The notes beneath the pieces are model-generated. The model saw only the letters and a list, made by a program, of their open reading frames with translations. It was not told the DNA's origin and made no database searches. The translations under genes were made by a program, and so were the position numbers. Of a stretch of 64,000 nucleotides of DNA, positions 8,177-61,821 are shown one piece after another; within the stretch, counting starts at the first letter, position 1, and each line of letters starts with the position of its first letter. Location of the stretch: the NCBI RefSeq assembly GCF_052425735.1, contig NC_135770.1, positions 4,278,001-4,342,000 of the forward strand, in the 5' to 3' direction. The DNA is from Oculina patagonica (taxonomy: Eukaryota).

Positions 8177-8207
<31 letters not shown>

Positions 8208-35229: not shown

Positions 35230-36066
35230 ATGGCGCAACACAAGACGGAGCTTAGAATCGTGGTCGGTTTTGCCCTGGTCGCGTTTGTGCTGGGTCATGG
35301 ACGGCTCATTGACCCTGCGAGTCGTAACGCCGCGTGGCGATTCGGATTTTCCAACCCGCCACATTACAACGACAACGAGCTGAACTGTGGAGGATTTAAC
35401 GTGCAGTGGGAAGTCAACCACGGGAAGTGTGGGGTGTGCGGAGACGCGTACCACGAGAAGAACCAAGCGCACATTTACCCAGGGAAATACGCCAACAATA
35501 TCATCACCAAGACCTACACAGAGGGGCAAGAGATCGAGGTCCTGGTCGATATTACTTCCAATCACCAGGGATTCTTTGTGTTCAGTGTGGGTCGAATTGG
35601 AACGGCTCCCATCACACAGGAGAAACTGAACTATGTTCTGAAACAAGCCAATGGTGATTCAAAGTGGCGATTGACTTCATCCGCGAATGATGTCTTTAAG
35701 ATCAAGTTGAAGCTCCCTGGCGGCCTGACATGTGATCACTGCGTGATGCAATGGTGGTGGACAGTGGGGAATAACTGGGGGTGTGATGCAGACGGCTGTG
35801 GAGTGGGACATGGAGAGAAGCAAGAGACTTTCGTCAACTGCGCTGATATAAGGATCACCGCCAAAGATGGCACTGTGGTCACGGACCCACCAACAGAAGC
35901 CCCTTCCCCCACAGTACCAGTTGTGACTGAGCCTCTCCCCACGAACGCTCCAAATCCTGGTGGATGCAAGGCGATAGGGCCCTGGGAAGGAAACACTGCC
36001 GTGGACAATTGGTGCGTGGTGAATTGTGGGAAGGGTTACTGCCCTGATTACATGTGCAAATGCTAG
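35230..36066 (+). CDS. Secreted AA15-type lytic polysaccharide monooxygenase, copy 1 (278 aa)
   Basis: 22-aa signal peptide ending VLG, then mature His1 (HGRLIDPASRNAAWR); NELNCGG; CGVCGD; TSNHQG (second His); CDHCVMQWWWTVGNNWGC; QETFVNCADI; P/T linker; 6-Cys C-terminal module; single coding exon. Confidence 0.92.
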   Translation: MAQHKTELRIVVGFALVAFVLGHGRLIDPASRNAAWRFGFSNPPHYNDNELNCGGFNVQWEVNHGKCGVCGDAYHEKNQAHIYPGKYANNIITKTYTEGQEIEVLVDITSNHQGFFVFSVGRIGTAPITQEKLNYVLKQANGDSKWRLTSSANDVFKIKLKLPGGLTCDHCVMQWWWTVGNNWGCDADGCGVGHGEKQETFVNCADIRITAKDGTVVTDPPTEAPSPTVPVVTEPLPTNAPNPGGCKAIGPWEGNTAVDNWCVVNCGKGYCPDYMCKC

Positions 36067-36809
36067 CTCAAAGCGGCATTAGTAAAATCGCTGAACTTTA
36101 AATTAATTATGCCATAATGAACATATATTACCTACTGAAACTGTTTGATTCGTAGACAATAAATCATAACGTTTGATTCAGGAGCTTAGCAACCTAAGCG
36201 GGACAGGCAACAAAACGTTTCTAAACGAAAGTTTTACTAATATGAAGCAAATTTAAAAGGCTTGTAACGTGTGTTGTATAGACATCTTAATTAGTACCCT
36301 GGTTCTTAGCCGTCAACTTCAAAACAATAATGTAAATTAACAAAAGGGCCTTGACATGTTTATCAGTTTGTGAAGAACAGAAAGCTCAGTGAATTTATCA
36401 TATATTTTATAGTAAAAGGCTCTCTCTGACTTTTTATTAGACACTTGTGGACCACACGATAGGTTAATAGATTAAAACGATATAGCCAAATACCTAAAAA
36501 AAGATTATCTGAAACCGCGTCTAACGTGATGGCTGCTTACTCCTTATGGCTAAAAAAACCTCTTCAAATTCTTGCTATCAACGGGAAAAATAATATTAAA
36601 AATACTAGCTACATGGGTGCGTTAGTTTACGTTTTAAAACCTTTGTAAAGCGCCATTATTGATTTTGTGGCTAAGATCGAGTGACTGGCTGAAGATTCTG
36701 TCCGCATATAACATGCTTATTTGTCTTGAGCTTTATTATTTCATGATTAAAGTGAGTGTTCAGTATACGTAATACCTGGATTTCATATCTTTCTATACAA
36801 CAGCGAATC

Positions 36810-37240
36810 CCCGGGGGGGGGCACTCAAAAAAGTTTTATACGGGGAGGCTCCGCCCCAAGCTCTTACCCCTTACCCTTTTATATACCATTTTCACAGAAA
36901 TTGTACCCCTTTCGTATAACTTACTGAAAAAAGGTACCCCTTTCATGTACCTAAAAGACTTGGCATAGACTTAGAACAGGACGTTTTCTTGTCATTTTCA
37001 AGTAGCGCTTTATAAATTAAAATTATACAGCCATAAAGTGCGTCTGTTCGTGCGTCTGAAGTATTCTAATCAAGGCCCTTAAAAAAACCTAAATGACGGA
37101 TTTCCATACCCTTTCGTATACCAAAACTTGTAAAATCCCTACCCTTTTATATACCTGAAGCCTGAAAAAGGTACCCCTTTCGGGCGGAGCCTCCCCGTAT
37201 AGGCCACTATATGGAGTACCCCTCCCCCCCCCCCCCCGGG
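36810..37240. mobile_element. MITE with CCCGGGG...CCCCGGG termini
   Basis: Subterminal inverted repeats tatacggggaggctccgccc / gggcggagcctccccgtata; imperfect 8-bp TSD agcgaatc / agcgaaac. Confidence 0.7.
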
Positions 37241-38829
37241 AGCGAAACTCACAATAAAACACGGTACAACACAACTAAGATTCTGTTTATACAGCTTTGG
37301 CTGGCATTCAACCCTCGCAAACTTCAACAAAGCTCTTAGAGTTTACGAACCCCGATATTTTCCCTGATAATACACAGCTGTTCACACGATTCATGTGAAA
37401 CACAGAAACTCTTCGAATATTAGCTGCTGCTATCGCGCTTATCGACCTTCTTTTTGAAGGAACGGTTAAAACACTGTATTTTCTCAAATAAACGCCGGGC
37501 TTCCAAGGAAGAATTGTAAACAACCCCCTCAAGAATTTATTTGAGGGCTAAAATGCATAGTTGCAATGGAAATATGTCAAGTCTGTCCAAAATAATGTAT
37601 GAAACCCTTGTTTAATAAACTTCAGGCTCGAATTAACATCAGGAGTCAACGCCAGGTCCACCAGGCCAAGTTTGAAATACACGCCGGGGGCGTTTAATAG
37701 AGAAATTATTACGGTACAGCGTAATCGACCTTGTCTATTCTTAAACTTTCTCTAACTTAAAGACCAATGTCCCTCCTTTAAATAAAACGGAGGTTATATT
37801 ACAATATCGTTTGTCATATAATTTTTTGTCATTTATTTGGTCTTCCCTTTGTGTTCTTATGGTCATCGTTTACTGTAACCCGGATGAACAAACTAATTTT
37901 TTTTTGTCTTTGTTCGTTTATATAGGACGAGGTTAGGATCGGAACTCCGACATTAACTCGTTTTGCAACAACTCAATTAATCGCCTTCCATATACGTTCA
38001 AACTCAACTTTCACGGAATAATCAAAATTATAATATAATGTATGCTGTCGGAAGAAGTCAAAATATAATCGCGGACATGATAAAGGTGAATAAAAATATT
38101 AGTTTACCGAACAGAAGACGTTTGTGTTCGATCACAATTTGGAGCAAAATAGGTCCTTTTTACAAGCACTTCTAGAGCTAATAACCCAAGCTCAAGCTGT
38201 GCATATCAGGGGCGATAAAAAATGCATTACCTTCAACAGTGTGCTTCTTGCTGTCAGCTTGCTGTCGGTGCGATTGCTTTACTGATTCGAAGCGATTCTC
38301 GGGTAAGACCGATAACTCACTAAAATTGCCTCCGATAAGTAGCAAAGTAAGCGCAAACAAATAAATAAACAGGTGAAGTAAGGTAATTAAGGCACAGAAT
38401 TTTTAAGTATTCCAACTTAAATTAAAGTTTCCAAAAATATCTTGGCTGATCATGATTCGCAGCTTGAGCTTGGGCCGCCTGTGGCATTGGTCACTGTTGG
38501 TTTACACAGCAGGTAGTGTCTTTTTGTCGGAGTACATCATGTAACTATGGCAACCTTTCTTCGGCTTTCAGTGTCTATAAGACATGGTATGTTAGCTCTG
38601 TGTTAGCACATGGGTTTTATTCAATAGCAATAGGAAAAACTTTTTCATTTACAAAATTTCGATAAAGACAATCAAAAGAAAGGAAGGATAACCAAGCCGT
38701 TATCCACTGCAAGAGGCGTAGCCGAGTGCAGTATTGAAAATTTCTCGTTCATTTTGCGGCCAGCGCGTGCGTGCATTTGGAGACTAAACACGAACGGTCA
38801 GACTCTTACCCTTTTAATATACAATCTTA

Positions 38830-39300
38830 GGGCCTGTTTACATGATTCCGGAATGACTTTCATTCCGGAACGAAACTCGTTCCGGAATGAAGTTCGTTCT
38901 GCATTTATATGACAGAGTCAACTGGCTCAGCCAAAAGCATTTTCACGTGTGCGATTTTCGCGCGAGATCAAAACAAGGTGGCGCATGTTTCGCGCAAACA
39001 TGTTTTTGTGCCCAGTGATGGCCGCATCTGCCATTTTAACGAGTAATTTGACCATAGAGCTGCTTCTTTGGGTAAACAGTATGCGGTTTCATGAGTTGCG
39101 ATTTCATCTCGGAACGAAATTCGTTCTGTGTTGTCATTCCAGAACGAAACTTTCATTCCGGAATGAAAACCGGAATGAACTCATTCCGGAATGACTTGAC
39201 TTTCGTCTCGGTATCATGTAAACAGATACAAAGAAATGTATGGGGATGGAATGAACTCGTTCCGGAATGAAAGTCATTCCGGAATCATGTAAACAGGCCC
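38830..39300. mobile_element. PIF/Harbinger-like MITE, copy 1 (internally deleted)
   Basis: ~45-bp TIR gggcctgtttacatgattccggaatgactttcattccggaacga; TTA/TAA flanks; internal ttccggaa palindromes. Confidence 0.8.
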
Positions 39301-40006
39301 TAAGTACACTGCAAGCGATCATCGACTTAACGAACTTCAAACAATAATGTTTAAAAATGAGAAGTGAAGTAGTACACAATTACACGGGATAAGATCAAAA
39401 ATATAAAAATCACAAATAAAATTATAAGCCATACAGAAATAAAGCTTAAAATGGTCCATAAAATCGTTTATCAGCTGTGGTCGTTCATAAATACAGTCAA
39501 CGAGAAGCTTGTTCAAAGCAAGTCCTTAGTAGATGGCTTTCACAATTAAGCAACGAACAAGTCAATCGCACACAAAAATGTATTAATTGAGCTGCAGTTT
39601 ACCTTTTAACATGAAAGCGTTTCAAATTGTTATCCTCTTCGATAGTGTTTGGTATTGGATCGTTGATAATTTGAGGAATATATTTTTCTTTCACTTCTGC
39701 AAGCCTTGAAGCTGAAGACATTTTCAATAATGCGTGATTTTTGTGCATTATTATCAATACTCAATACTGCACTTTCGGAGTTTGCTGACGACAGGTAAAG
39801 CAAAATCACGTGATCTATTTTAACCAATTTGCGCGCGTGGATTTTGGACAGTGAACGAAGATTGTATATTAAACCAAAAAGTAACTTGAGAGGAATTTTT
39901 ATTGAAATAAAGTCTTTTAAAATATCATTAAAATATCATGCTTTGCACGCTACTCTCCGGTTTTTAATTGAAAAAAAAAAGAAATGGGCACGGGCGCCTT
40001 GTGATA

Positions 40007-40578
40007 GGGCCTGTTTACATGATTCCGGAATGACTTTCATTCCGGAACGAAACTCGTTCCGGAATGAAGTTCGTTCTGCATTTACATGACAGAGTCGATC
40101 GGTTCAACCAAAGGCATTTTCACGTGCGCGGTTTTCGCGCGAGATGAAAACAAGGCGGCGCATGTTTCGCGCGAGATGAAAACAAGATGGCGCATGTTTC
40201 GCGCAAACATGTTTTTGTGCCCATTAATTGCCGTATCTGCAATTTTAACGAGTAATTTGACCATAGAGCTGCTCCAATGGGCTAAACAGTTAATGCTATT
40301 ACGTTTTTTCGATTTGAATTCAAACTGTGGAGTCCGTGTGCGGTTTCATGAGTTGCGATTTCATCTCGGAACGAAATTCGTTCTGTGTTTACATGAAACC
40401 GGAATGAAATGTCATTCCAGAACGAAACTTTCATTCCGGAATGAAAACCGGAATGAACTCATTCCGGAATGACTTGACTTTCGTCTCGGTATCATGTAAA
40501 CAGATACAGAGAAATGTATGGGGATGGAATGAACTCGTTCCGGAATGAAAGTCATTCCGGAATCATGTAAACAGGCCC
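40007..40578. mobile_element. PIF/Harbinger-like MITE, copy 2
   Basis: Same TIRs and interior as 38830-39300, about 100 bp longer. Confidence 0.8.
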
Positions 40579-43097
40579 TTAGGCCCAATTAAAACTGAAG
40601 CATTTCAAGCAAGAGCAAGAGTTCTTTAACTTTAAATTCACAAAGAATGCAAGATAACAATTTGATTTCTAAAATGTTGTGTATGTAATTCATTAAAACA
40701 TTTTGCCAGATTAGGGCTTTGCGGGTGGGATTTATATATTGCTCCGCGAACGAGTCAAAATAAATAAATAAAACAATACACTAGACCCTTAATTGTGTTC
40801 AATATTGCCCAAAAAATTCATTGCCAAAAGAGGCCCTTTGCAGCTGGGGTCGCGTGACCAAATTTTCGCTAAAAAAATATATTATGGGCTATTACTTAAC
40901 GAATGCCAGAATTCGAAATGGGAGAAGCATGTTGAAAATATCAAAACGGTTAAGTTTGACGTGCCTAGCATTAAAGAATGAGATTTTATTATGGTTGATT
41001 TTTTTTTAGAGTTATAAAGATTTGTATGGATCCCGGAGAATATTACTGGAGCCGGCAAGACCTTCATTCACATTTGAAAAACACATATCTTATAAGACTT
41101 CTTCAGGCAAAATATAAACAATTAACCGAAAGTGTCGTTGGTGTCTCAGCAGTTAGCCATTCCAAATATAAATGATTATTTACTAGAATCCATAACGTTT
41201 TAAAATGTCTATTCACAAGGCTGAAAAGGTTAAAATACTTGAAAAGGAAAAAAAAACGTTTTTGACATAATTATGTCTTGTTCAAGGTTTTTTGAGAATA
41301 ACTAAATTAGGGAGAATCGTTTCATCCTTTCCTTTTTAAGTAGTTTAAAACATTGAATGGGAAAAAATATCTTCCGTGTTCCTCACAACTCTTCTCCTGT
41401 TCGCTGTACAAGCCGAGACGTGTCAGGCTGTAGTTGTTCGATAAGGGACGATAATCTTTTCCTTATCTGATATAATGTTATTTTGAATTTGTGTCGTATA
41501 GATAGATTAAGGTGGATAGCAACAGTTTCCTGCACTTAACTTTAATAGGTCAATATTACCACTAATTATCAGTTAATACTGCGAAAAATATCTGTATCTA
41601 ACGAATGCGTAATCATTGCGGGTAAGAAATGCGTTGCCCTATATCTTTGTAATACAGTAAAAAACGACGAGTAATAAGAACCTAGTTTTTTTTTTCCAGG
41701 TTAGCCTTAACAGGTTCTTACATAAATGGTAGTTAACACAAATTTAGGCTATTTAGGGTCTTAATAGGTTCTTATTTTCTGAGGAAATATTTATATTGTT
41801 GCCTAATAGAGCTTTTAGTGATATTCGGCCTATATTTGTATACAATTTGCATACCACACAAGTGTTTAAGTAAACATGAAGCACTATTCATTCAGAACAT
41901 GACATTGTATACATGAACAGTAAAGTCTTGGCCAAAGTTATTGTCCTAAAAGTAAACATTTTTAATAACTTTTAGAAAATAAGAACCTGTTTTCAAATTT
42001 TAGGCTAAATAGGTTTTTATAAAAATGGGGAATGTTAGATTCTAACTTGCAGATTTTTACTGCATAACAGTTTGCCATAGCAGAAGTATTACTTTTATAA
42101 ACTATTGGTGGTTGTATTTTTTGTTGAAAATAATACGAGAGAGGATGAGGTGTAAAGGGCGTTTTATGTTTACATAAACTGTAAGGCCGAATTAAAACTT
42201 TGACACTCAAGTGAATTTGAGAAACGTCCAAGTAAGAGCAAGTGTGTTAACTAAAATTCACAAAAAATGCTAGATTAAACAATTTGATTTCTGAAATGTT
42301 GTGCATGTACCTTATTCTCAATTAATTTCGCGAGTATATGTACTAAATTTTGCAATTTTGATACTTTAATACTCGCGAAATATAGGACACGCGAAGTCTA
42401 AAATCGCAAAATTTAATATCGTACTGATAATATAAAAAATAATGAAACTCGATTTGTTTTATCATAGTTATTCCAACATGTCTGAGCTTCATGTTTAGAA
42501 GTTTTTTGTTTAATTTTGTCCATTAGTTATTTCTCACTCTATCAGTCGCACTGTTCGAACTGTTCTCTGCCGCCAAGTTCTTCAAAATCTCGCTCTTGCA
42601 GTCGTAGATGAACCTATAAGGTATTTAGACTGTTGAATACCTTATGTTTTGTTATGTATATATTGTTTTGTTTGCTGCTTTTACGATATTAAAACATTTT
42701 GGCAGATTAGGGCTTTGTAGGTGGGATGCACTAGACCCTTGTTTTCAATATTACAAAAAAAAAAATTCATTGCCGCATAGAGAAAATTACAGCTTAATGG
42801 GCCCTTTGCAGCTGGGATCGCGTGACCAAATTTTTACTTAAAAATTGTAGTTTTATGGAATATAACTAAACAAATGCCAGAAATAGAAAGAGCATTTCAA
42901 AAATATCAAAATGGTTAAGTTTGAGGTCCATAGCATTAAGATTTTATTATGGTTTAAATTTTTTAGAATTATAAAGATTTGCATGGAAAATGTTGCTGGA
43001 GCCGGCAAGACCTTCATTCACATTCGAAAAACAAATATTCAGGCAAAATATAAACATCGATTTGGAAATACATGATACAAGAAATATAAATGATAAG

Positions 43098-43136
43098 AAC
43101 CGACGTTTTGGAGCATCTTGCGCCATCATCAAGGTT
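43098..43136 (-). ncRNA. Degenerate Penelope-type hammerhead motif inside a small inverted-repeat insertion
   Basis: Minus strand aacc-TTGATGA-t-ggcgca-aga-tgctcc-AAAA-cgtc-ggtt; helices I and II pair, core differs from consensus. Confidence 0.45.
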
Positions 43137-43467
43137 ACATACCATGTTGACCGAGACGTCGGTTCTTATCATTTATATTTCTTGTAAAATATAAACAATT
43201 AACCAAAAAGGTCGTTGGTGTCTCAGCAGTAAGCGATTCCAAATCATTATTTGCTAGAATCCTTAACGTTTTAAAATGTCCATTTACTAGGCTGAAAAGT
43301 TAAATGCCTAAAAAGGAAAAAAAACGTTTTTGACATAATTATGTCTGGTTCAAGGTTTTTTTAGAATAACTGAACTTAGGAAGAACTGCTTCATTTTTTT
43401 TTCTTTTTACTGAGTAGTTTTAAAAACCTTTTATGTCATGTAAATACTTATCTTTCACTCAAATTTA

Positions 43468-43980
43468 CCGTATTTTCTCGATTAAACGCCGGACCCCGAT
43501 TGAACGCCGGCCTCGTATAAACGCCGGGGGCGTTTGTTCGAGGTCCCGGCAATTACTTGAAGTCAAGCTAACAAGTGAATATACTCTCTTGAATGGCAGC
43601 GCTATAACATTTTAGTATGGTATGCTGCTTTGGATCTAAAGCAGCATACCGTGCTAATATGTTATAGCGCTGCCATTCAAATATTGATTGCAACATAAAC
43701 GTGTCCAATCCGCAATAATGGACCTTTGGGTAATTATCAACTTTAAAAACCCAGGGATAGTTTTTCGGGGCACTAAACGAAGAGAAAAGTCGCCCCGCCT
43801 TGACAAACTCCCCCTTGGTCTCAAAGATCGGTAACAGTAAATCAATCTGAAAAATTGACAGAAAATTACAGTCCTTTAATAGACGCCGGGCCCCGATTAA
43901 ACGCCGGCTTCAAAAAAACGCCGAGTCTACCAAGCCAAGTTTGAAATAAACGCCAGGGGCGTTTAATTGAGAAAATACGA
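43468..43980. mobile_element. Tc1/mariner-pogo-like MITE with TA TSD, inserted between repeat units; contains a nested 92-bp hairpin
   Basis: TA-ccgtattttctcgattaaacgcc ... ggcgtttaattgagaaaatacga-TA; relatives at ~37472-37715 and ~57993-58240. Confidence 0.75.
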
Positions 43981-46269: not shown

Positions 46270-46610
46270 ATACATTGAATATCATAGACGTCATTTGGGT
46301 GTGTTATTTCTTATTTTATCATCCGCAGTGATATTGGAATATTGATAATAGCTCAGCGTTGTCTTTAAATTTAATATATAGTTTCCTCTATGGAGAAATA
46401 TTGCATGCAAAGGTTATTCAGAAGCCTGAGTTCCGGAACCGCTTGTATAAATATCCCCCACAAATATCACTGTAACCATGCCACGATATGTCTATATAAG
46501 AAGCTTGCAGCTTCAAACACGTACACTTCAAAGCTCTTGCTTACCCAGCACTTGAGAGAGTGCCGAGCTACATTTGTGCAACAGCATTGTCCAGTTTACA
46601 CGAAACAACA
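46270..46610 (+). promoter_or_regulatory. Upstream/promoter block shared by LPMO copies 2, 3 and 4
   Basis: gtttcctctatgga...gcatg...ttatt...gcctga...gtataaat...agaagcttgca.cttcaaac recurs at ~51440-51660 and ~53690-53842; TATA-like gtataaat at ~46446. Confidence 0.55.
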
Positions 46611-47534
46611 ATGGGAGCGAAAGAAATTCTTCGCCTTCTCGTGGCCGCAAGCGTAATTGCTTCGGTTGTTGGCCATGGAATGCTGATAAATCCTGCTAGC
46701 AGAAACTCCGCATGGAGGTTTTTCCCCAATCGTCCAGCACAGTACACAGACAACCAGCTAAACTGTGGAGGTTTCAACGTCCAATGGTCCGAAAACCAAG
46801 GCAAATGTGGAGTGTGCGGTGACGCCTATCATCTCACAAACCCCAAGTACGTCTACCCGGGAGAGTACGCAAAGGACGGTTTCATCACCAAAACATACAA
46901 AGAAGGGCACGAGATTGACGTTACCGTAAAGATTACTTCAAATCATCAAGGCTACTTCCGCTTCAGCGTGGGCAAACTCGAAAAGCGACCAATCACTCAA
47001 GAGCAACTGAAACACGTTTTGTTACAACCCGATGGTTCTGACACATGGCCCCTTCACTCATCCGGAACTGGAGATTTCAAGATTAAACTCTTGCTTCCTA
47101 AAGGCCTGACATGTGATCACTGCGTGATGCAATGGTGGTGGACTGTGGGCAACAACTGGGGCTGTGACGAAGACGGCAATTGTGGAGTTGGAAAAGGAAA
47201 GGAACAAGAGACATTTGTGAATTGCGCTGATATTAAGATTGTGTCAGCTGGAGGCCCAGCGCCGCCTTTCACTGAGGCCCCTCCAACTGAGAGACCCACC
47301 ACTCAGGCTCCTTCCACGGCAAAGCCAACTACAGAGATGCCCTCTACGCAGAACCCACCCTCCACTCAAGAACCCCCAACTGAAGGACCTGCTACCACAG
47401 TTCCACCAACGAAATTACAATCTGGAGGATGCAAGGCCACAGGACCGTGGAAAGGAAATGCCAATATGGACGAATGGTGTAGTGTTAACTGTGCATTGGG
47501 TCATTGCCCTTCCAGCCACTGTGTGTGCGCTTAA
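46611..47534 (+). CDS. Secreted AA15-type LPMO, copy 2 (307 aa)
   Basis: MGAKEILRLLVAASVIASVVG|HGMLINPASRNSAWR; TSNHQG; QWWWTVGNNWGC; QETFVNCADI; long P/T linker; 6-Cys module; AATAAA at ~47629. Confidence 0.92.
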   Translation: MGAKEILRLLVAASVIASVVGHGMLINPASRNSAWRFFPNRPAQYTDNQLNCGGFNVQWSENQGKCGVCGDAYHLTNPKYVYPGEYAKDGFITKTYKEGHEIDVTVKITSNHQGYFRFSVGKLEKRPITQEQLKHVLLQPDGSDTWPLHSSGTGDFKIKLLLPKGLTCDHCVMQWWWTVGNNWGCDEDGNCGVGKGKEQETFVNCADIKIVSAGGPAPPFTEAPPTERPTTQAPSTAKPTTEMPSTQNPPSTQEPPTEGPATTVPPTKLQSGGCKATGPWKGNANMDEWCSVNCALGHCPSSHCVCA

Positions 47535-49817: not shown

Positions 49818-51847
49818 TCCTGTGTATGGTAGCTCGATAATAATTGCCTAGTTTCCAGCGTTCAAAAGGTCATCATTATATTGACGTGAGCATTTACACC
49901 CGTTTTTAGGAAAATCTGTCACTAAGTGCTTACAGTACAATGGAGTATTAAACAGTCACTATTTCAAGTGCTTTTATTGCAAAATCTGTTTCAAGAGTCA
50001 TCATCAAAATGGTGAAAAATCTGAAAGAAAACGATGTGAAGTTCTTCAACCCTTGTTGTAATGAACATGCTTTTTGAAAATCGTCACGCAATCTTATCCA
50101 AATGTTTAATCGTTTCTGCTTTTACGGACAATACGAAAGAGGTAACATCAACTCCTGTTCATACTTTAAATTTTGTGAAGCATATAACATTTATGACTGT
50201 TTCGTTTTCATCCATAATCATCCATGATGCCCCTAGCTTGCTATAAGCATTTTAAATTAAACTCCCGAACACAAACCTCTAACCAATTTTAACCGGCTTA
50301 CGAAAACCGCGCAATCTGTTCACTATGCCATACGGCATTAGACTCATGTCACCCTTGGTGACCTATTTTTTATGAATGCAAAGCAAATTTGTGTCAGCAG
50401 CAAAAAGAATAAATGATAAAATCTTGGGCAGCATATTGAAATATCGAAGATAGGCCACCCCTGAGGCACTACACATGTTATTGAAAAGCTTTCAGAGCTT
50501 ACTGGCTTGTATTTTCTTTTTGTTAAGTTGTTCAGTTTAGTGCCACTCGTTTGCTCGCTTGCAATTCCCCTAATTCCATAATGGTCAAGTTTCCTTAGAA
50601 ATATCTCATGATTTACATGCAGTATCGAATGACTTTGCGAGGTCTAAAATATACTTGCAATGGCTATTTATTGTTATATATTGCTTGTGATATTTTTGTC
50701 ATCAGCCTAATAGTTGCTAAGCTTGTTGAGTGTTTTTCAGAAAACCATACTGACATTAGAATAATATGTTGCTCTGGTCAAAATATTGAAGTACTCTTTT
50801 TTTTTTAATAATTTTTCTGGGCCATGGGAGAGCAGAGCTAGGTCTGCAATTAGAGTATCCTTCTTCATTGTTTGCTTTAAATTCTGGGGTAACAAGTACA
50901 ACATAAGGTCATAAGGAATCATACCAGTAAGAAATCTAAAGAAAGCAGTGGTTACTTATGTATTTTAATTTCATCCTGACCACAAGGCTTGTTTCCATTC
51001 AGCCGGCTTATTTCAAACTCTTCTCCGTTCCTTTATTGAAAAAAAAAAGAAAGAAAGAAATTGAAACAGGCTTCTTGTGTTTACACAAAGTATCAGGCCG
51101 AATTAAGCCTACGGCGCAGTCAAGAGAATTCGGGCCAGAGTTCTTTAACAAAAACTCAGTCGTTGAGTCCATTCAAAGTGCTTAACAAATTACGGCGTTG
51201 CGGGATTTATTGCTCGGCGAAAGAATCAAAATAAACAAATAAATAAATGAATAAAACAATGCACTAGACCTTTGTGTTCAATAATAGAAGGAAAATCTAT
51301 TTACAAGGTTGAAAAGGTTGAAATACCTAAAAAGAAAAAAAAAAACGTTTTGACATAATTTGACATATCTTTTCCTTTTTAAGTAGCTAAACCTTTTAAG
51401 CCTTGTAATCAGTACTTATTTTAACCTATAGCGAATAATATGGACGTCATTTGGGCGTTTCATTTCTAATTTTATCATCACCAATGATATTAAAATATTG
51501 ATACTAGCTAAATTTAATATATGGTTTTCTCTACGAAGAAATGTGGCATGTGAAAACGTTTATTTTGATGCCTGACGTCCTGAGCCGCCTGTATAAATCG
51601 TCCACGCAAATGCAAAACGCTCGCCACTATATATTTACACTAGAAGCTTGCAACTTCAAACAGCCCACAAATCGTGCTTATTCAGCTTTGAACAGCCTTC
51701 AACCTCACGATTTTTAACAAAGCACCAAGAATTGAGGTTTCGTTGTATTTTTTGTGGACCAACACAGCTGCTAACGTTTGATAACAACTGAGTAGAGTTC
51801 TGAGCTTCATTTGTGTACCAACATTGTGAAGTACACACGCAAAGACA

Positions 51848-52789
51848 ATGGGAGAGAGAGAAATCCTTCGCCTTCTCGTGGCCGCAAACTTGATTGCTTT
51901 CGTTCTTGGCCATGGAATGCTGATAAACCCAGCTAGCAGAAACTCTGCATGGCGGTATTTCCCCAATCGCCCAGCGCAGTACACGGACAACGAGCTGAAC
52001 TGTGGAGGTTTCAGCGTCCAGTGGAGCAAGAACAAAGGCAAATGTGGAGTGTGCGGTGACGCTTATCATCTTACAAGCCCGAGGTACGTCTACCCTGGGA
52101 GGTACGCCAAAGACCGCTTCATCACCAAGACCTACAAAGAAGGGCACACAATTGAAGTTACCGTAAGAATCACTTCAAACCACCAAGGCTTTTTTCGCTT
52201 TAGCGTGGGCAAGCTCGAGAACAGAGAGCGACCCATCACTCAAGAGCAACTTAAGCACGTCCTCCTGCAACCCGATGGTTCCAACACATGGCCGCTTCAC
52301 TCATCCAGAACTGGAAATTTCAAGATTAAACTCAATCTTCCCAAAGGCCTGACATGTGACAATTGCGTGATGCAATGGTGGTGGACTGTCGGCAACAACT
52401 GGGGCTGTGACGAGGACGGCAATTGTGGAGTTGGCAAAGGGAAGAAACAGGAGACGTTTGTGAATTGCGCTGATATTAAGATTGTGGGAGCTGGAGGCCC
52501 AGCGCCGCCTGTCACTGAGGCTCCTCCGACAGAAAAACCCACCACTCAGGCTCCTTCCACGGTAAAGCAAACCACAAAAAGGCCCAACACAGAAAAACCC
52601 TCTACACAAAGACCCTCTACGCAAGGACCCCCAACTGAAGGACCTGCTACCACAGTCCCAGCAACAAGACCTCCTACTGGAGGGTGCAAAGCCACAGGAG
52701 CGTGGGCCGGGAATGCTAATATGGACAAATGGTGTCGTGTTAACTGTGCAGCGGGTTATTGCCCTTCCAGCATTTGTGTATGTGCTTAA
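51848..52789 (+). CDS. Secreted AA15-type LPMO, copy 3 (313 aa)
   Basis: Signal peptide ..AFVLG|HGMLINPASRN; TSNHQG; QWWWTVGNNWGC; QETFVNCADI; linker; GGCKATGAWAGNANMDKWCRVNCAAGYCPSSICVC. Confidence 0.92.
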   Translation: MGEREILRLLVAANLIAFVLGHGMLINPASRNSAWRYFPNRPAQYTDNELNCGGFSVQWSKNKGKCGVCGDAYHLTSPRYVYPGRYAKDRFITKTYKEGHTIEVTVRITSNHQGFFRFSVGKLENRERPITQEQLKHVLLQPDGSNTWPLHSSRTGNFKIKLNLPKGLTCDNCVMQWWWTVGNNWGCDEDGNCGVGKGKKQETFVNCADIKIVGAGGPAPPVTEAPPTEKPTTQAPSTVKQTTKRPNTEKPSTQRPSTQGPPTEGPATTVPATRPPTGGCKATGAWAGNANMDKWCRVNCAAGYCPSSICVCA

Positions 52790-54071
52790 AAGCGTATTTA
52801 CCGTAAAGGCGTTGATTTTATATGTAGTAATGTTTGTTTGATGATTCAGTCTTAGGTTGTAGCTAGGTCTTATTTACTGATATCAATAAAAGTGGGCCAA
52901 TTTCTTCACCAGCTGACTTCTGATTTTGTTCCGAAATAGTTAGTGTTTTGAGCATTTTCGGCTCAGTGAATTACCAACAAAGCATGGTCTGTATATTTCT
53001 CCCGGTCTTGAGTGACTTGTCGGGGATTGGAGTAACAAGTTCTTAAAAAATATCATAAAATGTTTAGTGTACCCTAGATCTGTTTCAGCTGGTTTATTGT
53101 TTTTCACGAGTCTTAACGATGCACTAGATCTTTGTGTGCAATAACACGAGAAAAACAAAAAAGAAAACAATTTTTTCGCGAAAAGCCAATCAAGTGCAAA
53201 CCACGAGTCGAAACGATTGGGGGGGAACTCCCTTATATAAGCTATATAAGTATGCGAGGCGCCAAAGGGTATAGTTTTTGAGCCGTTCTGGCCACAAATA
53301 GGGTAAGGATTTGGACCATCTTTGGTTTGTGATCGCAAACCGGAGCAGTTCCTGGGTAATGTCTAGTCAGAAATAAGTGAAAGAAAAACATATATTTTGT
53401 ATGAAGTATGGTAAGGGTTTTTTTGGAAACGTGCCGCACACTCCCACCAAAAATTTAGGAGAGTAACTAGGAGCCCATTCCTGGAGCCTGAGTAACCCAA
53501 CCACCAAACCACCACCCCCTCCTCCCAGACCCCCCTGGGACATACTTTTGTCACGGTCTTGGCTCGAGTTTTTGCACGAAATGCAAAGTTGAATATATAG
53601 TCATATTCCTTAATTATTATACACATCATTTGGACGGTTAAATTTTTAATTTTAACAGCAATAGTGGGAATGTTGTCGCTGTTGTTAAGTTTTATATTTG
53701 GTTTCCTCTATGGAATTGTTGCATGTGAAACCGTTTATTCAGACGCCTGCATGAGTGTCTGAACCGCCTGTACAAATCTCCCCCACCCTTACACAGCAAA
53801 CACGCCGCGCAAAATTTACACTAGAAGCTTGCAACCTCAAACATTTCAAAAATAGTGCTTATCCAGCTTTGACCAGCATTCAACCTCCCGATGTTTTAAC
53901 AAAGCTTCTAGAATTGACGCTTCGCTATATTTTTCAGGTGGAGCAACACAGCTGCTCACGTGATTCCATACTAGTCAAGTCAACTGAACGTTTGAAATCA
54001 CATTGATAGCACACGAGACAGCTCCGAACTTCATTTGTGTACCAGCACTGTGAAGTACACAAGCTAAGACA

Positions 54072-54719
54072 ATGAGAGCAAGAGAAATCATTCGTCTCTT
54101 CGTGGCCGCAAGCTTGATTGCTTTGGTTCATGGTCATGGAATGATGTTAGATCCCGCCAGCAGGAACTCCGCATGGAGATTTTTCCCCAATCGTCCAGCA
54201 CAGTACACAGACAACGAGCTGAACTGTGGCGGTTTCAGCGTCCAGTGGAGCAAGAACAAAGGCAAATGTGGAGTGTGCGGTGACGCTTATCATCTTGAAA
54301 ATCCGCAGTACGTCTACCCTGGATTGTACGCCAAAGACCGCTTCATCACCAAGACCTACAAAGAAGGGCACACAATTGAAGTTACCGTTAAGATCACGTC
54401 AAACCATCAAGGGTTCTTCCGTTTTAGAGTAGGCAAGCTCGAGGATCCGAAGAGTCCCATCACTCAAGAGCAACTGACACACCTTCTGCTGCAACCCGAT
54501 GGTTCCAACACATGGCCGCTTCACTCGTCAAAAAATCAAGAGTTCAAGATTAAGCTCGTGCTTCCCAAAGGCCTGACATGTGATCACTGCGTGATGCAAT
54601 GGCGGTACACTGCGGGCAACAACTGGGGCTGTGATAAGGACGGCGATTGTGGAGTTGGCAAAGGGGACCAACAAGAGACTTTTGTGAACTGCGCAGATAT
54701 TAAGATTGTGGCAGCTTGA
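54072..54719 (+). CDS. Secreted AA15-type LPMO, copy 4 (catalytic domain complete; 3' end uncertain, abuts the gap)
   Basis: ..ALVHG|HGMMLDPASRN; TSNHQG; QWRYTAGNNWGC; QETFVNCADI; TGA falls 4 nt before the N run. Confidence 0.85.
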   Translation: MRAREIIRLFVAASLIALVHGHGMMLDPASRNSAWRFFPNRPAQYTDNELNCGGFSVQWSKNKGKCGVCGDAYHLENPQYVYPGLYAKDRFITKTYKEGHTIEVTVKITSNHQGFFRFRVGKLEDPKSPITQEQLTHLLLQPDGSNTWPLHSSKNQEFKIKLVLPKGLTCDHCVMQWRYTAGNNWGCDKDGDCGVGKGDQQETFVNCADIKIVAA

Positions 54720-54723
54720 GCTC

Positions 54724-54864
54724 NNNNNNNNNNNNNNNNNNNNNNNNNNNNNNNNNNNNNNNNNNNNNNNNNNNNNNNNNNNNNNNNNNNNNNNNNNNNN
54801 NNNNNNNNNNNNNNNNNNNNNNNNNNNNNNNNNNNNNNNNNNNNNNNNNNNNNNNNNNNNNNNN
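54724..54864. other. Assembly gap (141 N)
   Basis: Run of N. Confidence 1.
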
Positions 54865-54932
54865 CGAACAAATGAATGAATGTATGAATGAAATAAGCTG
54901 AAGGTAAAATATGAAGAAAAAATAAATAAGTA

Positions 54933-54991
54933 AATGAATGAATGAATGAATGAATGAATGAATGAATGAATGAATGAATGAATGAATGAAT
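54933..54991 (+). repeat. (TGAA)n microsatellite
   Basis: About 14 perfect units; source of the FIHS-repeat ORFs. Confidence 0.95.
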
Positions 54992-55963
54992 AAGTGTTGT
55001 AGTGCAGCATTCAAGGCGTGCATTGAATTGAGAATTAACTGCATACACCTCTACCTAAGTGCCCTATATGACCTTTTTACAATCTTTTGTTTTTTATTCA
55101 GTTGAATGAAACATTATATCATTCTCAAAAGAGGTGCAGAGGACATGGAACGAATTTTGCCAACATTTTCGCTAGACCCGGAGTACGCAGGTATCTCCCA
55201 TGAGAAGAACGAAAGGTTGTTTGTCCTGCACAGTTGCTTCGAGTTTATTTTAATTTTTCTGTATCATATTACAGGATAGAGTTTCTTGTTAAACACCATA
55301 AAGAGTGACGAGGGGTGACGAATATCCTGCGCAGAAGAAGCAAGAGTCGAATACCTAAAGGCGCAAGATTTGGCCACTCGCGCGCGCCAGAAATACTCGT
55401 GTTTCATCGTGCGCATTTTTCTCGCGAGAAAGTACGCGGAAATGTTCCTCCTAGCTTTTATACAATATCGTGCCTGTTATGCAAGAAAGCATCGTTGACC
55501 TTTAAGTCCCAAATTCAAAAAAATTATATTCTCGTAAATCATAGCAAACATTTCTTTTTCCGTTAGTTCTGAAAATTTCGTGGCAAATCAAAACAATATC
55601 CTAAGTTGATTATTTTCTTAATTCTCTAAACGTGACTTCTTCACAATGTGTTGATATTTTGACGGGAAATTACACGCTGATCATATTATAAGAACATAAT
55701 TTAAATGAAAATGAACATTTTCTCGAGTGTCTTTATAGAACTTATTGACTGCTCTTAGACCTTTCATTGGAAGTAATAGTATCTAACAAAAAATCAAAAT
55801 CAAACATACAATCTCAGTACTCTTATAAGTCTTCGTTTATTGAAATGATACCATTACCTTATTTTCACAATGTTCACTGTCAAGTCTACAGATAACCCAG
55901 ATAACCCGTTCCCTTTCTAATCACATCGAGAAATTCAGCTAATTGGTGTCAAAGTTCTTCTTT

Positions 55964-56812
55964 CTAAGTACAAATGCAGATACTTTCTGGGCAGTGACCT
56001 TTGGCGCAGTTATCTCGGCACCAAACATCCATGGCTGCGTTCCCTTTATAAGGACCTGTAGCTTGGCAGCCCCCGGGGTTAGGGGCATTTGTGGGCGGAG
56101 GGTCGGTAGGTTTCTGGGTTGTCGGTTGTGTAGTAGGAGGCGGTGCCTGTGTTGGTGGAGGCGGGGGCACACTTCCGTCGCTTTTGGTAATTCTGATGTC
56201 TGCACAGTTAACGAAGGTCTCCTGTTCTCCTTTCCCCATACCGCAGTCATTAGGTGCGTCGCAGCCCCAGCTGTTAGCCACCTTCCACCACCACTGAATC
56301 ACGCAGTGATCACATGTCAGGCCTTTGGGAAGTACCAGCTTGATTGTGAACACCTCATTCTTCTTCGAGGGTATTGTCCACCTGCTGGCACCATTGGGCT
56401 GCTTCAGTACATGCGTCAGCTTCGCTTGAGTAACGGGAGGGGTTCCGATCGCGCCCACACTGAACGTAAAGTGCCCCTGATGGTTGGAGGTGACATCTAC
56501 CAGCACATCAATGGTCTCCCCTTCGGTGTACGTGTTAGTGATGGTCCCAGTGGCGTACTTCCCGGGATGTGTGTACAGCGCCTCGCCCTTTTTGAAATGG
56601 TACGGATCTCCACAGACGCCACACTTGCCATTGTTGGTTTCCCACTGGACGCTAAACCCGCCACAGTTCAGCTCGTTGTCTGTGTCTTGCCTCGGCGTCA
56701 AAAATCCATACCGCCAGGCTGCGTTTCGGCTAGCTGGTTGGATAAGACGACCGTGACCCAGAACTAAGGTTATCACATTAAGCGCGACAAAGGCTTGAAA
56801 AATCGCTGCCAT
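55964..56812 (-). CDS. Secreted AA15-type LPMO, copy 5 (282 aa)
   Basis: MAAIFQAFVALNVITLVLG|HGRLIQPASRNAAWR; TSNHQG; QWWWKVANSWGC; QETFVNCADI; linker; 6-Cys module. Confidence 0.92.
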   Translation of the reverse strand: MAAIFQAFVALNVITLVLGHGRLIQPASRNAAWRYGFLTPRQDTDNELNCGGFSVQWETNNGKCGVCGDPYHFKKGEALYTHPGKYATGTITNTYTEGETIDVLVDVTSNHQGHFTFSVGAIGTPPVTQAKLTHVLKQPNGASRWTIPSKKNEVFTIKLVLPKGLTCDHCVIQWWWKVANSWGCDAPNDCGMGKGEQETFVNCADIRITKSDGSVPPPPPTQAPPPTTQPTTQKPTDPPPTNAPNPGGCQATGPYKGNAAMDVWCRDNCAKGHCPESICICT

Positions 56813-59054
56813 CTTGCGCGTACTTGGCTCGGCAACTTCTTAGCTTTTGTGATCTCGAACTGATAACACCTCGAATTATAGCCTTTTACCAAAGTTTTCC
56901 ACGTGATGTACAATGTTGAATTAGCTGTTATGTGAAGAGCAAACACAGGGGAGATGTGTCTAAAATGCTGTATAAGATGTCTTGTGTTGGAAAGACTTAA
57001 AATCAGAGGATGTGTACAGTGTATTCACACCTTGATGGTTTGAGATAAGAGTGTCATTGTCGCACAGAGGAAAAGTTGACAATTTACACACAGGTGATTC
57101 TGGGTAAACATCACAGATACAGGTGATTACATCGGGCTTTGTGTACATTTAGATATTTTTGTCGGCGAGGGTGGAGGTGTAGGTAGGAGAGGAAATCAAG
57201 TTTTTGTATCGGTAAAAATGGCAAATTCACTGATTTAGAACAGAATAATAATTGTAAAACTTTACGACAAAATTAGCTCTAATTAAAAATCTATTAAAGG
57301 ATCTCAAGGATCCCTCGCAACCATGATACGTCGCCCGCGCGACGTGTGGCATCCGATATTTTTTCTGTCATCTAATTTCGGACATTTCGCATGTTGAAAA
57401 GAAATCCTCGTCCATCCTTGTGCGTTTGCATTATTGAAGTCTTTAACTGCCACAAATGCTTTTTTGGAATAAAATTTATAAGTTGAACTTGAAGATAAGG
57501 ACCCTAGACAGCCTCCGCCATTTTCGATGCCATCGAAATTATGAAAACTGTACGGCGAAACGAAATCTTAAGTTGTGTTAGGCAGTTTCAAAGTTAACCC
57601 TTTCGTTTAGACACGCTCCACGAAAAACATATTACCGAAACTCTTGCATATGAATAAAAACAAAGGCGTGGCAGACAGGGTCCTTTAAAGACTAAAAGCA
57701 ATTTCGCCATATTCTTATGCTTTTAATTCTCTTGTGAGTTTTAGTTTTGTTGTTTTGCGCATCGTTTATTAAAATTAAACCTGCGAAAGATAATCCACAG
57801 AAAAAAGGAAAGTATTACCTACATTCCTGCCATAAAATATATGTAAGACAGTAAAAATACGAATGACAGCTGTTAAAGAACCGTTATTTTTATTATCATT
57901 GCATTTGATAAGAATAGTCCGTTTTTGTACATTTTTTGCGCGTAAACCATGGAATATCGCAAAATCCAGTTTACCCGCGAAAATTTAACCAGTACCGTAT
58001 TTTCTCGATTTAACGCCGGGTCTCGAATTAACGCCGGGTTTTCAAGGTGGAGTTGTAAATAAACACCTCAGGCATTTTTGTGAGGTATGAAAAGCTGTAG
58101 TTGTAGTCCGGCAAGATATTTGACTGTCAAAATTAATGTATAAAACCCCTTTTTTACTAACCACCGTGCTCGAAAAAACTGCAGGAGTCAAATAATTGCC
58201 GGGTCCACCAGGCCAAGTTTGAAATGAACGCCTGGGATGTTTTAACCAATTTTGAACGAGCTCACGCGAATTCTAAAGCCGCGCAAATATAGAGCAGGGT
58301 TCTGTGGAAATTACTTTATCTGAAGTACACACATCGATGAAGATTGCTATACTTTAAATTTCTTAGCTTAAAACGAGCAGACGGTCACGAAGATTAAAAC
58401 GGCTAACATTGGTCGTTTTAATCAAGTTTCTAACATGCACAGTAGACACAGACAATAGTACTCAAATTCTGAATCAACTACTCAGAAGCTATATCGATTT
58501 TCCTTTTGTCCGACGAATCATGGAAAAACTCTGTACATTATTGCTAACTTTAATTTTACCAAACAGATATGAAAAGCTTAAACTTACCGTAGAAAGAGTT
58601 AGCCAAATTTCGCGTCGAAGCCTAGGTTTTTGCGTCGTTTGCGATTGTTTTTACTTAACAAATCATCCTCAAAACAATTAAAAACCGAAAAAAAAACGAC
58701 GTTTGCAGCAGAAAGAAAGGAAAGCGTCTATAGTAAAATCATATTTATTTCATCTAAAACAGATTAGTTTCAATTCATAAGCAATGAAGGCAAAACGACA
58801 TCGATGAGACACACTTGACTCATAAAGCACAATGCGTTCATGGAATGAATCTGGCTTGCAAAAGCTACACATACGAATAAGGAAGTCACATTCACCTAGG
58901 AGTACAAGTGGTAGTGAGGTGTTAACTATATATTATACCTGTTTACCCGTTTTTTTTTTTCAAATTCCGGGCAGTTTCTTAAGACTCCAAATCTTTTTTT
59001 TCCTAAACAATAATGACCCCTTGTACTTTAAAGACTCAAAAACTCATTCCCAGG

Positions 59055-59330
59055 TTGCGCGCGTTTGGTTCGGCAACTTCTTAGTGCTTGTAATTTTAAA
59101 CTGATAGCAAATCAAATCAAAGCCTTCACGGGAGTTTTTCACGTGATTCACGACATTGAATCACCTGTGTTGTGTTAAGATAAACACAGAAGATTCATGT
59201 CTGAAACGCTGCAAAAGACGTCTAATGTTTGAAATACGTTTAAACAGAAGATGTGTACAGTCCAGTTACACCTTGGTGATTTGTAAATAAGAGTGTCATT
59301 CTTGAACGCAAAAGTTACACACAGCTGATA
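59055..59330 (-). pseudogene. Orphan LPMO upstream/5'UTR block with no coding sequence (remnant of a probable seventh copy)
   Basis: Collinear similarity to 56814-57090 (upstream of copy 5) that stops at the start-codon position. Confidence 0.6.
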
Positions 59331-60948
59331 CCGTGCATATTGTGAGATTGTTTTGGGGGAGGGGACAGGAGACCTGACTTCACCACAAATTATTCACTTT
59401 TATATACGTTACGTTCAATTGAAATACTACCGGCCAGGCCATTGAGTTAAGATCGCCGTAGTGAATAAAATAAGCCCTTAATCGAAAAGAACGCTTACTT
59501 TTTATTAGCCGGACTCGCTGATATTTCGGTTAAAATCAAATCGGATTCTTGCATATGTTGTCTGAAGTTGACATACATCGATGTACTTTTTTTTTACTTT
59601 GAGAGTTCTCAGCTCGAAATGAGCAGACGTTCACGAACATTGAGATACCGGCCTAACACGGATTTTGTATTGGTTTTGCCGTTTTTAAATTTCAGCTTTC
59701 ACACACGAACATGAATAGCCTGCGAATACAACCGCCTCTTATCATTCTGGCAGGCAAAAGCGGTGTAAGAAAAGTAAATGTTACTTTATTTACCCACGTA
59801 ACACAAAAAACTTTCAAGAGCATGTTATAAAGTCTATGTGTATCAAGATTGAATTGGAATTTGAAGTGTTGGCTTTTAATTTTTGAAGGGAAGCAAACCG
59901 GAGAACATGAAGAAAAACTCACAGAGCAAGGACGAGAACCAACAACAAACATTGGTGGGAGGCGAGCGCTCTCACCACTGCGTTAACCCTGCTTAGGCGT
60001 TTTTCTCTCTATATATTTACCAGCTGCTGTTGTAACAGAACGTAGTCTTGGAAAATATATAAAAATTGAAACCTTTCCTTCACTTGTAACACGTTCCTTC
60101 ATTTTAACACGTTATTTACAACAGTTTAGACGTGAAACAATAAGAGTCATAAGTACTCTCTACATAGTTTTTTTGGTCGAACTATAATACTTTAGCGGAA
60201 CCACAGGTTGGTTTTATCATCGAACACGGAACTTGAAAATCCCACTTTAACAGAGCTAATAAAACTCGGACGGGCGAGCTTTTTGCCCTTCCTAGTGAAA
60301 TTGACACCTTCCTGGCTTAGGTAAGGGTAAATTCTGCGTTCGATGCCGGTACTAATACTTACTGCTTAGTAAAGAAAGGCACTGTAAGAGTAAACTAGCA
60401 TACACGATATACCAAAATGGCAATTGATATTATTTTCTTTTGTAACTCATTTTAATAAAGTCAGGATTTAGATTTAGGAGCCCAGGGGAAAAAGCTAGGG
60501 CTATATTTCAAATATAGCCCTAGGGAAAAGTTTCCGTGTATTCAATAAGATCAGATACCCATAATATGGGTTTCTGATAAGATCCAATCAAAAATACACA
60601 CAAATACTCCGGAAGTCATCATTTCAGCATGACGTAATGGTTTATGTTTCTTAGCAAATTGGAACGAAAACTTCGACCTCAGTCTTTTTTTGACGACATG
60701 CTCTCTCCCACTGGTAATTATTCTCCCGTGTTTAGTGCATAATTGATGAAACTCGACGCATTATAAGTGAAATATTGGCGTGTTTTATTGTAGATCTGTG
60801 CAGGATACAAGCGGAACAGTACGACTGAAAAGGTTATATGCTTTGAATTTCTCTCCTATTACAGTTTTTATTGTCCAGTCTACAGATATCCCCTCCCCTT
60901 TCTAACAACATCAATTATTTCAACTAAAACGCATGACAGTTCTTCCTT

Positions 60949-61821
60949 CTAAGTACATTTGCAGTGACTGGGTGGACAGTAGCCTGAAGCGCAATTTCTT
61001 CTGCACCAGTCATCGATGGATGCGTTCCCTGTGTGAGGACCTGTAGCTTTGCAACCGCCTGGATTAGGGGCGTTGGTGGGCGGAGGCTCGGTAGGCTTCT
61101 GAGTTGTGGGTTTTGGAGGCTGTTGCGTAGGAGGCAGGGGTTCTTGTGTAGGAGGCGGCGCCTGTGTTGTTGGAGGCGGGGGTACGCTTCCGTCGCTTTT
61201 AGTAATCCTGATGTCTGCACAGTTGACAAAATGTTCTTGTGGTCCTTTCCCCATTCCACAGTCACTCCCATCGCAGCCCCAGTTGTTACCAACCCTCCAC
61301 CACCACTGCATCACGCAGTGATCACATGTCAGCCCTGCGGGAAGCTTCAACTTGATCGTGAATACGTCGTTGCCGTGCGAGTTTATGTACCACTTCGTAT
61401 CACCATTGAGCTGCTGCTTCAAATCGTACGTCAGCTTCTCTTGAGTAATGGGAGGAGTGTCGATCTTGCCTACACGGAATATGAAGTATCCCTGATGGTT
61501 GGAGGTGACATCTACCACCACTTCAATATCTTGTCCTTCTATGTACGTCCTAGTGATGATTTTTGTCGCGTACGGTCCAGGGTGGACGTACTTGGGGTTT
61601 TTCAAATGGTACGCGTCGCCGCATACTCCACACTTGCCTTTGTTTGTGGACCATTGGACGTTGAACCCGCCGCAGTTCAGCTCGTTGTCCGTGTCTTGCC
61701 TCGGCGTTTCAAACCCGTACCTCCACGCTGCGTTTCGGCTGGGTGGGTCGATAAGACGGCCATGGCCCAAAACAAGGGCAATCAGATTTAGCGCAACAAA
61801 AACTCGAAACATTGGTGCCAT
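60949..61821 (-). CDS. Secreted AA15-type LPMO, copy 6 (290 aa)
   Basis: MAPMFRVFVALNLIALVLG|HGRLIDPPSRNAAWR; TSNHQG; QWWWRVGNNWGC; QEHFVNCADI; linker; 6-Cys module. Confidence 0.92.
   Translation of the reverse strand: MAPMFRVFVALNLIALVLGHGRLIDPPSRNAAWRYGFETPRQDTDNELNCGGFNVQWSTNKGKCGVCGDAYHLKNPKYVHPGPYATKIITRTYIEGQDIEVVVDVTSNHQGYFIFRVGKIDTPPITQEKLTYDLKQQLNGDTKWYINSHGNDVFTIKLKLPAGLTCDHCVMQWWWRVGNNWGCDGSDCGMGKGPQEHFVNCADIRITKSDGSVPPPPTTQAPPPTQEPLPPTQQPPKPTTQKPTEPPPTNAPNPGGCKATGPHTGNASIDDWCRRNCASGYCPPSHCKCT

Follow-up and report, generated by a model that had tools for sequence, protein, structure and literature searches.

Between positions 35230 and 61821 of a 64,000-nucleotide stretch of the Oculina patagonica genome (NCBI RefSeq assembly GCF_052425735.1, contig NC_135770.1, positions 4,278,001 to 4,342,000 of the forward strand; hereafter the window, whose numbering is used throughout), six genes, referred to as g1 to g6, encode lytic polysaccharide monooxygenases (LPMOs) of CAZy family AA15, as is shown by both sequence and fold. 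It is probable, judging from the active site and from the company that an accessory module keeps in other proteins, that the products are secreted, copper-dependent enzymes that oxidise chitin.

Each gene is an intact and uninterrupted open reading frame (ORF); four lie on the plus strand and two on the minus strand, and the two blocks are convergent, just as an earlier reading of the letters by themselves (the sequence-only reading) had described. Its statement that no copy has a coding intron also holds, with every copy forming a single ORF and the RNA contigs of g5 and g6 being unspliced. The array is composed as follows.

35230-36066, plus strand: g1, AA15 LPMO of 278 amino acids with signal peptide, catalytic domain, Pro/Thr linker and six-Cys module (35965-36063); PF03067 match at E 1.5e-21
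46611-47534, plus strand: g2, AA15 LPMO of 307 amino acids with a long Pro/Thr linker and module (47430-47528)
51848-52789, plus strand: g3, AA15 LPMO of 313 amino acids with linker and module (52685-52783)
54072-54719, plus strand: g4, AA15 LPMO of 215 amino acids, catalytic domain alone
54724-54864, no strand: assembly gap (run of N), 4 bases 3' of the g4 stop
55964-56812, minus strand: g5, AA15 LPMO of 282 amino acids with linker and module (55970-56068)
60949-61821, minus strand: g6, AA15 LPMO of 290 amino acids with linker and module (60955-61053)

The ATG of g2 is at 46611, the mechanically called ORF beginning at 46560. Five of the six genes (g2-g6) have been called independently as LPMO_10 genes on the same chromosome (GCA_052425735.1, CM126647.1), where g2 likewise has 307 amino acids. 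No further LPMO copies or fragments were found in the 64-kb window by tblastn with all six proteins, and the DNA between the array genes holds only short ORFs and high-copy repeats.

Family assignment, fold and active site

All six proteins match the Pfam model PF03067 (LPMO_10) from end to end (E values of 1e-19 to 1e-22), a model that spans AA10 besides AA15-type proteins. When the structures in the Protein Data Bank (PDB) were searched with g6 using phmmer, the founder of the AA15 family, TdAA15A from Thermobia domestica (PDB 5MSZ; Sabbadin et al., 2018, PMC5823890), was matched at E 1.7e-44 (g6 residues 20-208, chain residues 1-194), and no other LPMO chain, AA10 included, was returned at an E value of 1 or better. 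This alignment pairs His20 of g6 (His1 of the mature protein) with His1, His109 with His91 and Phe198 with Tyr184. The same relationship is seen in the fold. A single-sequence AlphaFold model of g6 was poor (predicted local distance difference test score, pLDDT, of 43), and a model based on a multiple alignment of 89 sequences (pLDDT 88, predicted template modelling score 0.73) was used instead; its best Foldseek match is again 5MSZ (E 2e-22, template modelling score 0.92, root-mean-square deviation 1.4 Å, 42% identity over the whole catalytic domain). The next matches are AA10, AA11 and AA13 structures at E values of about 1e-5 and about 15% identity (14-18% for AA10). Membership of AA10 was considered and rejected: PF03067 is matched, yet AA10 chains are absent from the sequence matches and their fold match falls far below that of AA15. 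The AA15-type assignment of the sequence-only reading is thus upheld. Bacterial AA10 enzymes such as CBP21 do share with the coral proteins the Pfam model, the histidine brace, the design in which a binding module is joined by a linker and, in the chitin-active members, the axial Phe; they are set apart by the low identity and weak fold match just given and by the position of the coral genes, which fall in a cnidarian clade of the animal tree and not among bacterial sequences.

The features of the active site that had been picked out from the sequence are present throughout. In each of the six copies a hydrophobic leader ends in V-x-G directly before HG, and cleavage at this site, predicted by rule and by alignment to His1 of the mature crystal chain, would expose His1. 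Invariant in all six are the motif TSNHQG, which contains the second brace histidine, the motif QE(T/H)FVNCADI, which contains the axial Phe, and eight catalytic-domain Cys residues. Eight of the ten Cys residues of TdAA15A align with the latter, the remaining pair, an extra disulfide within the RLC...QDC segment, being absent from the coral copies. TdAA15A differs further in its axial Tyr and in the residue two places ahead of the second His, which is Ala there and Ser in the coral proteins; in the axial position the coral enzymes instead match TdAA15B, which has Phe. The Thermobia enzymes also consist of a catalytic domain only and are encoded by an intron-containing gene, whereas five of the six coral copies add a linker and module and all six are single-exon.

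In 89 cnidarian and mollusc homologues the second brace His never varies, and conservation of His1 and of the axial Phe is 90% or more. This bears on the suggestion that the proteins retain the LPMO fold but bind chitin or copper without catalysis, for example in immune recognition or adhesion. Some LPMO-fold proteins are indeed mainly binding or virulence-spindle proteins, and entomopoxvirus fusolins are found among the weaker fold matches of the g6 model; however, brace histidines, an axial Phe and neighbouring residues that are invariant or nearly so across the 89 sequences are what is expected of a constrained catalytic site, and we regard a purely binding role as very improbable.

If the proteins act as other LPMOs do, cleavage of the signal peptide after V-x-G would free His1, the amino group and imidazole of which, with His109 of TSNHQG, would hold one copper ion, Phe198 occupying the axial position. 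The reduced, flat-faced enzyme would then oxidise glycosidic bonds on the surface of a crystalline polysaccharide, most probably chitin, using O2 or H2O2 (hydrogen peroxide). In five of the six proteins the flexible Pro/Thr linker would tether the six-Cys module and so anchor the enzyme to its substrate, with g4 acting as a free catalytic domain.

Divergence, integrity and transcription of the copies

Over all aligned columns, protein identity is 82-84% among g2, g3 and g4 and 75% between g5 and g6, compared with 59-68% between subfamilies, g1 being the single representative in the window of its own, 'g1-type' subfamily. Synonymous divergence (dS) in the catalytic domain is 0.46-0.77 within subfamilies (about 0.46-0.58 for the closest copies) and large or saturated between them, and the ratio of nonsynonymous to synonymous divergence (dN/dS) is 0.11-0.24, which shows that the copies are under purifying selection. 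The local expansion proposed in the sequence-only reading is therefore real but old, and not recent; the diversification that it also proposed did not stand, the dN/dS values, which are pairwise averages, giving no sign of diversifying selection.

The same reading had raised the question of mis-assembled haplotigs. An assembly gap does lie within the cluster, and g4 is shorter than g2 and g3, so that an origin of the cluster in misassembly, contaminant DNA or dead copies deserves mention. However, a dS of 0.46 or more between even the closest copies means that they are not haplotigs; an independent DNA-like sequencing run gives even coverage, at about 55x, of the stretch from g5 to g6 and contains a 566-base piece with a single-letter difference from the window; other corals have the array too, beside the same neighbour; no ORF is broken, all evolve under purifying selection, and g4, g5 and g6 are represented in RNA runs; and the gene tree broadly fits animal phylogeny. 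The probability of an artefact is, in our judgement, negligible.

The stop codon of g4 is an in-frame TGA (54717-54719) that lies 4 bases before the N run, and since it precedes the gap, the gap interrupts no reading frame in the sequence as assembled. The stop falls at the point that corresponds to the first linker Gly of g2 and g3, and a tblastn search in all frames found no LPMO-coding remnant to the right of the gap, where a (TGAA)n/(ATGA)n microsatellite (54865-54990) is probably the cause of the assembly break. Forms that consist of the catalytic domain only, ending 3-5 residues past C-A-D-I/V, occur in many other cnidarians, and a close short-form relative (P0071) has a near-identical leader (MRAREIF...) and ends in CADIRISP. 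Of the sampled words of g4, nine RNA-labelled runs belonging to three studies contain 0.46-0.72, and one run of a fourth study contains 0.38; coverage in the RNA-labelled runs about equals that in the best DNA runs (0.73). As assembled, g4 is best taken for a live paralogue of the short form.

The transcript check, which the sequence-only reading had put forward, covered g4, g5 and g6 and provides evidence that all three are transcribed. Contigs of three RNA-labelled runs, placed on positions 55900-61899, cover only the body of g5 (55930-56838), the body of g6 (60781-61854) and high-copy repeats, and the unique intergenic DNA between the two genes has a depth of 0 in the RNA runs compared with the even 55x of the DNA-like run. 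No joints are found within the g5 and g6 contigs, so that these transcripts are unspliced; their 5' untranslated regions are a few tens of bases long, and one g5 contig differs from the window by 1 base in 253. TATA-like boxes are found 59-74 nucleotides upstream of the ATG of g1, g5 and g6 (about 59 in g6). Separately, an E-box, TCACGTG(A/G), lies 82-115 nucleotides upstream of the ATG of g4 (about 53957), g5 (about 56905) and g6 (about 61903, with another at 62087) and is mutated or absent in g1-g3; the whole 64 kb contains just 20 occurrences of CACGTG. A shared basic helix-loop-helix leucine zipper (bHLH-Zip) site may be involved, although g5 and g6 are paralogues and their occurrences are not independent.

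The six-cysteine module, substrate and role

In every copy except g4, the catalytic domain is followed by a Pro/Thr-rich linker and a 33-residue module with six Cys residues in the pattern C-x15-WC-x3-C-x4-C-x4-C-x-C, which in the alignment-based model of g6 forms a small strand-helix-strand unit (pLDDT about 83-89). A word-indexed search with this module (residues 246-290) recovered three close coral proteins only; an exhaustive profile search recovered 684 cluster representatives at E <=1e-3, with up to 21 copies per protein. Among the 92 long module carriers, 22 contain LPMO_10, 2 a GH18 chitinase domain (one at E 8.6e-89) and 1 EGF repeats, 2 more have weak matches below the Pfam cut-offs and the others have no Pfam domain, some of them being multi-copy module proteins. 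Besides AA15, GH18 chitinase is the only catalytic domain that accompanies the module in these 92 proteins, and no cellulase domain was seen alongside it. In the company that it keeps, the module resembles chitin-binding modules such as CBM14, and by analogy it probably anchors the enzyme to chitin. A language-model search of a protein atlas yielded no lead above threshold; the best (haptophyte hypothetical proteins at 0.69, CBM_10 at 0.58) were not used.

Those module carriers that have a name are AA15 proteins of gastropods and bivalves. The AA15 proteins of molluscs (Mercenaria, Haliotis, Solemya, Littorina, Nucella) belong to the same catalytic family as the coral enzymes and have the same six-Cys module, but differ in carrying 2-7 copies of it and, in Mercenaria, in a gene with two introns. 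The gastropod proteins of Nucella, Batillaria and Littorina have 5-7 copies. Proteins with repeated modules include P0121, P0122-P0125 and P0129; P0121 (1459 amino acids) contains 21-22 tandem copies, and P0129 has three modules between two matched GH18 chitinase stretches.

Copper binding, chitin as the substrate, a binding role for the module and the biological role are what we infer from these observations. Chitin is favoured because the axial Phe is of the type reported to be chitin-specific and because GH18 is the module's only other catalytic partner: the Phe-type TdAA15B was reported to be specific for chitin and the Tyr-type TdAA15A to be active on cellulose too (PMC5823890). Cellulose or another glucan, in the thecal or cell-wall cellulose of the dinoflagellate symbiont, in endolithic green algae or in ingested phytoplankton, would be an alternative target, and the closest solved relative, TdAA15A, cleaves both polymers, with some AA15 proteins even bearing the cellulose-specific carbohydrate-binding module (CBM) CBM1 (PMC5823890). 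All six coral copies, however, have the axial Phe of the chitin-specific type and not the Tyr of TdAA15A, and the module travels with chitinases and with no cellulase that could be seen, so that we consider a glucan target improbable.

For chitin-oxidising enzymes the role considered most likely would be the extracellular breakdown of chitinous material, be it crustacean prey in the gastric cavity, fungal walls or both. H2O2 is a co-substrate of LPMOs. Three points are consistent with a digestive and/or antifungal role, namely that corals feed on chitinous zooplankton (PMC5710165), that the mesenterial filaments of F. ancora express a chitinase (PMC11269664) and that Stylophora gives off H2O2 while feeding on zooplankton (PMC4753443). 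The main alternative is that the same enzymes act on chitin made by the coral itself, remodelling it in the organic matrix of the skeleton, the cnidocyst or developmental structures. Insect group I AA15 LPMOs, which like the coral proteins are animal-encoded and secreted and which act on chitin (as proposed here for the coral), are required for cuticle turnover at moulting (PMC9156745), a role that has no obvious coral counterpart, and the use of chitin by corals in skeleton building is the subject of a report cited in PMC5710165. Nothing in the present data separates remodelling from digestion. Three ancient subfamilies together with a free catalytic form suggest that several roles may coexist, and remodelling as the role in place of digestion or antifungal defence seems unlikely.

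Several observations weigh against digestive or antifungal chitin oxidation as set out above. The choice of chitin draws solely on the axial residue and on the enzymes that accompany the module. The module itself, when four isolated copies were searched with hmmscan at E values up to 10, matched no Pfam or CBM family, including CBM14, which is the CBM reported on AA15 enzymes (review PMC10154629); only a sub-threshold match to DUF7949 (E 0.28) was returned. The tissue-transcriptome paper on F. ancora and its supplements make no mention of AA15 genes (PMC11269664). On the side of transcription, the RNA label of the sequencing runs is a guess by software, and the g6 RNA contigs show a 4-5% difference from the window, for which reason their source may be a divergent allele or a sibling taxon.

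Taken together, the observations permit a broader proposal, which we put forward tentatively and consider possible rather than likely. The six-Cys module could be an undescribed chitin-binding family common to cnidarian and mollusc AA15 enzymes, some GH18 chitinases and multi-copy module proteins; stony corals could combine module-tethered LPMOs with a feeding-triggered burst of H2O2 to break down prey cuticle oxidatively; and the single-exon state could be ancestral for animal AA15 genes. Apart from this proposal, the module is a compact, uncharacterised candidate for a new carbohydrate-binding family, widespread in molluscs and cnidarians. A conserved set of enzymes that oxidise chitin would give the coral chitin toolkit, for which, to our knowledge, only hydrolytic chitinases have been discussed so far, a second arm dependent on copper and peroxide, and would offer a possible biochemical use for the H2O2 released by feeding corals. 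The handling of chitin by corals, in zooplankton capture, in defence against endolithic fungi and in their own matrix, is poorly known, and for LPMO research the coral enzymes represent a non-arthropod animal branch of AA15.

The presence of AA15 in cnidarians is not new, since Cnidaria were already included in the family tree in 2018 (PMC5823890, Fig. 2), a placement that was repeated in PMC9156745. In the literature on corals, Nematostella and cnidarians, however, no functional or genomic description of an AA15 enzyme or LPMO was found for any cnidarian, which extends the statement of the sequence-only reading that it knew of no functional account of such a coral array. What is modestly new is the conserved single-exon tandem array, the three ancient subfamilies that include a free catalytic form, and the uncharacterised, widespread six-Cys module.

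Phylogeny, gene structure and genomic setting

Homologues were found in stony corals, sea anemones, a scyphozoan, a hydrozoan, molluscs and an ostracod. The nearest named relatives (Stylophora, Montipora, Acropora, Desmophyllum) are all stony corals, in line with the apparently cnidarian origin seen from the letters. In a tree of the catalytic domain, bilaterian and cnidarian sequences separate, the mollusc proteins forming a group together with the ostracod sequence (SH-like approximate likelihood ratio test, SH-aLRT, 93, not starred). Medusozoan, actiniarian and hexacoral clades are starred, and a stony-coral clade of 57 rows lies within the hexacorals (SH-aLRT 88). The stony-coral clade contains two clades, of g5/g6 type (98) and of g2/3/4 type (97), and a grade of g1 type; Stylophora and Montipora occur in both of the inner clades, and Acropora in that of g2/3/4 type as well. 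All three subfamilies have members from Stylophora, Montipora or Acropora, which places the main duplications before the split between complex and robust corals (Acropora/Stylophora), and inheritance looks vertical. The arrangement is conserved as well. The array adjoins an asparaginase-ankyrin gene in another coral assembly (L002 364-4252) and in Desmophyllum pertusum (L004 1-1317), the same position that this ASPG-like neighbour has in the window, so that microsynteny is conserved. Phylogeny and synteny are both checks that the sequence-only reading had proposed, and the neighbouring gene is thus shared with at least two other stony corals.

A separate clade on the cnidarian side (P0075, P0080, P0082) has an axial Tyr (Y-A/S-N-C-A-D-I) and not Phe, with one to three modules, and hence both axial types exist outside arthropods. 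In Desmophyllum pertusum one array member (P0074, L004 10001-10920) lacks the GKCGVCGD...YPG segment. What is annotated there as an 'intron' seems to span a deletion or frameshift, so that the copy is probably either decaying or wrongly annotated. Two 'proteins' of 495 amino acids (P0001 and P0003) look like fusions of adjacent genes.

Stony corals and Rhopilema have the whole coding sequence in one exon. Introns are present elsewhere (two in Mercenaria, three in Clytia, two in Actinia), and the intron-bearing Clytia and Actinia genes show that the intronless state is not general in cnidarians. An intron-exon structure was described for virtually all invertebrate AA15 genes (PMC5823890), to which the coral and scyphozoan single-exon genes are therefore exceptions. 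The seven introns mapped in the clam, the hydrozoan and the sea anemone share no position or phase, and no shared ancestral intron is apparent among them; for this reason neither loss nor gain can be claimed and the polarity is undecidable, and for the same reason the single-exon state could be ancestral for animal AA15 genes. In Actinia tenebrosa, at least three AA15 genes on mixed strands are arranged in tandem within 13.5 kb (L008 47-13480), with introns in each gene and an in-frame stop in one copy.

In the window, two genes lie upstream of the array: a multi-exon PKD/REJ/PLAT-like gene (about 1-16.7 kb) and the asparaginase-ankyrin gene (18641-30000). The neighbours had been called intron-rich, which is correct; both are upstream, and no gene is evident downstream of g6 (61.9-64 kb). 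The exons of the first (1-16700, plus strand) resemble REJ, PLAT/LH2 and polycystin-channel domains, as in a PKD1-like receptor, and a reverse-transcriptase-like ORF (3392-4048, minus strand) lies inside one of its introns. Very high-copy repeats are found at 57300-57700, 57900-58300 and 59900-60100, where the depth of the DNA-like run reaches thousands to 159,000, and are present in RNA runs too. At the repeat near 59949, many contigs show a flanking tRNA-like 'GGGAATCGAACCCGGGCC' end, which suggests a tRNA-derived short interspersed nuclear element.

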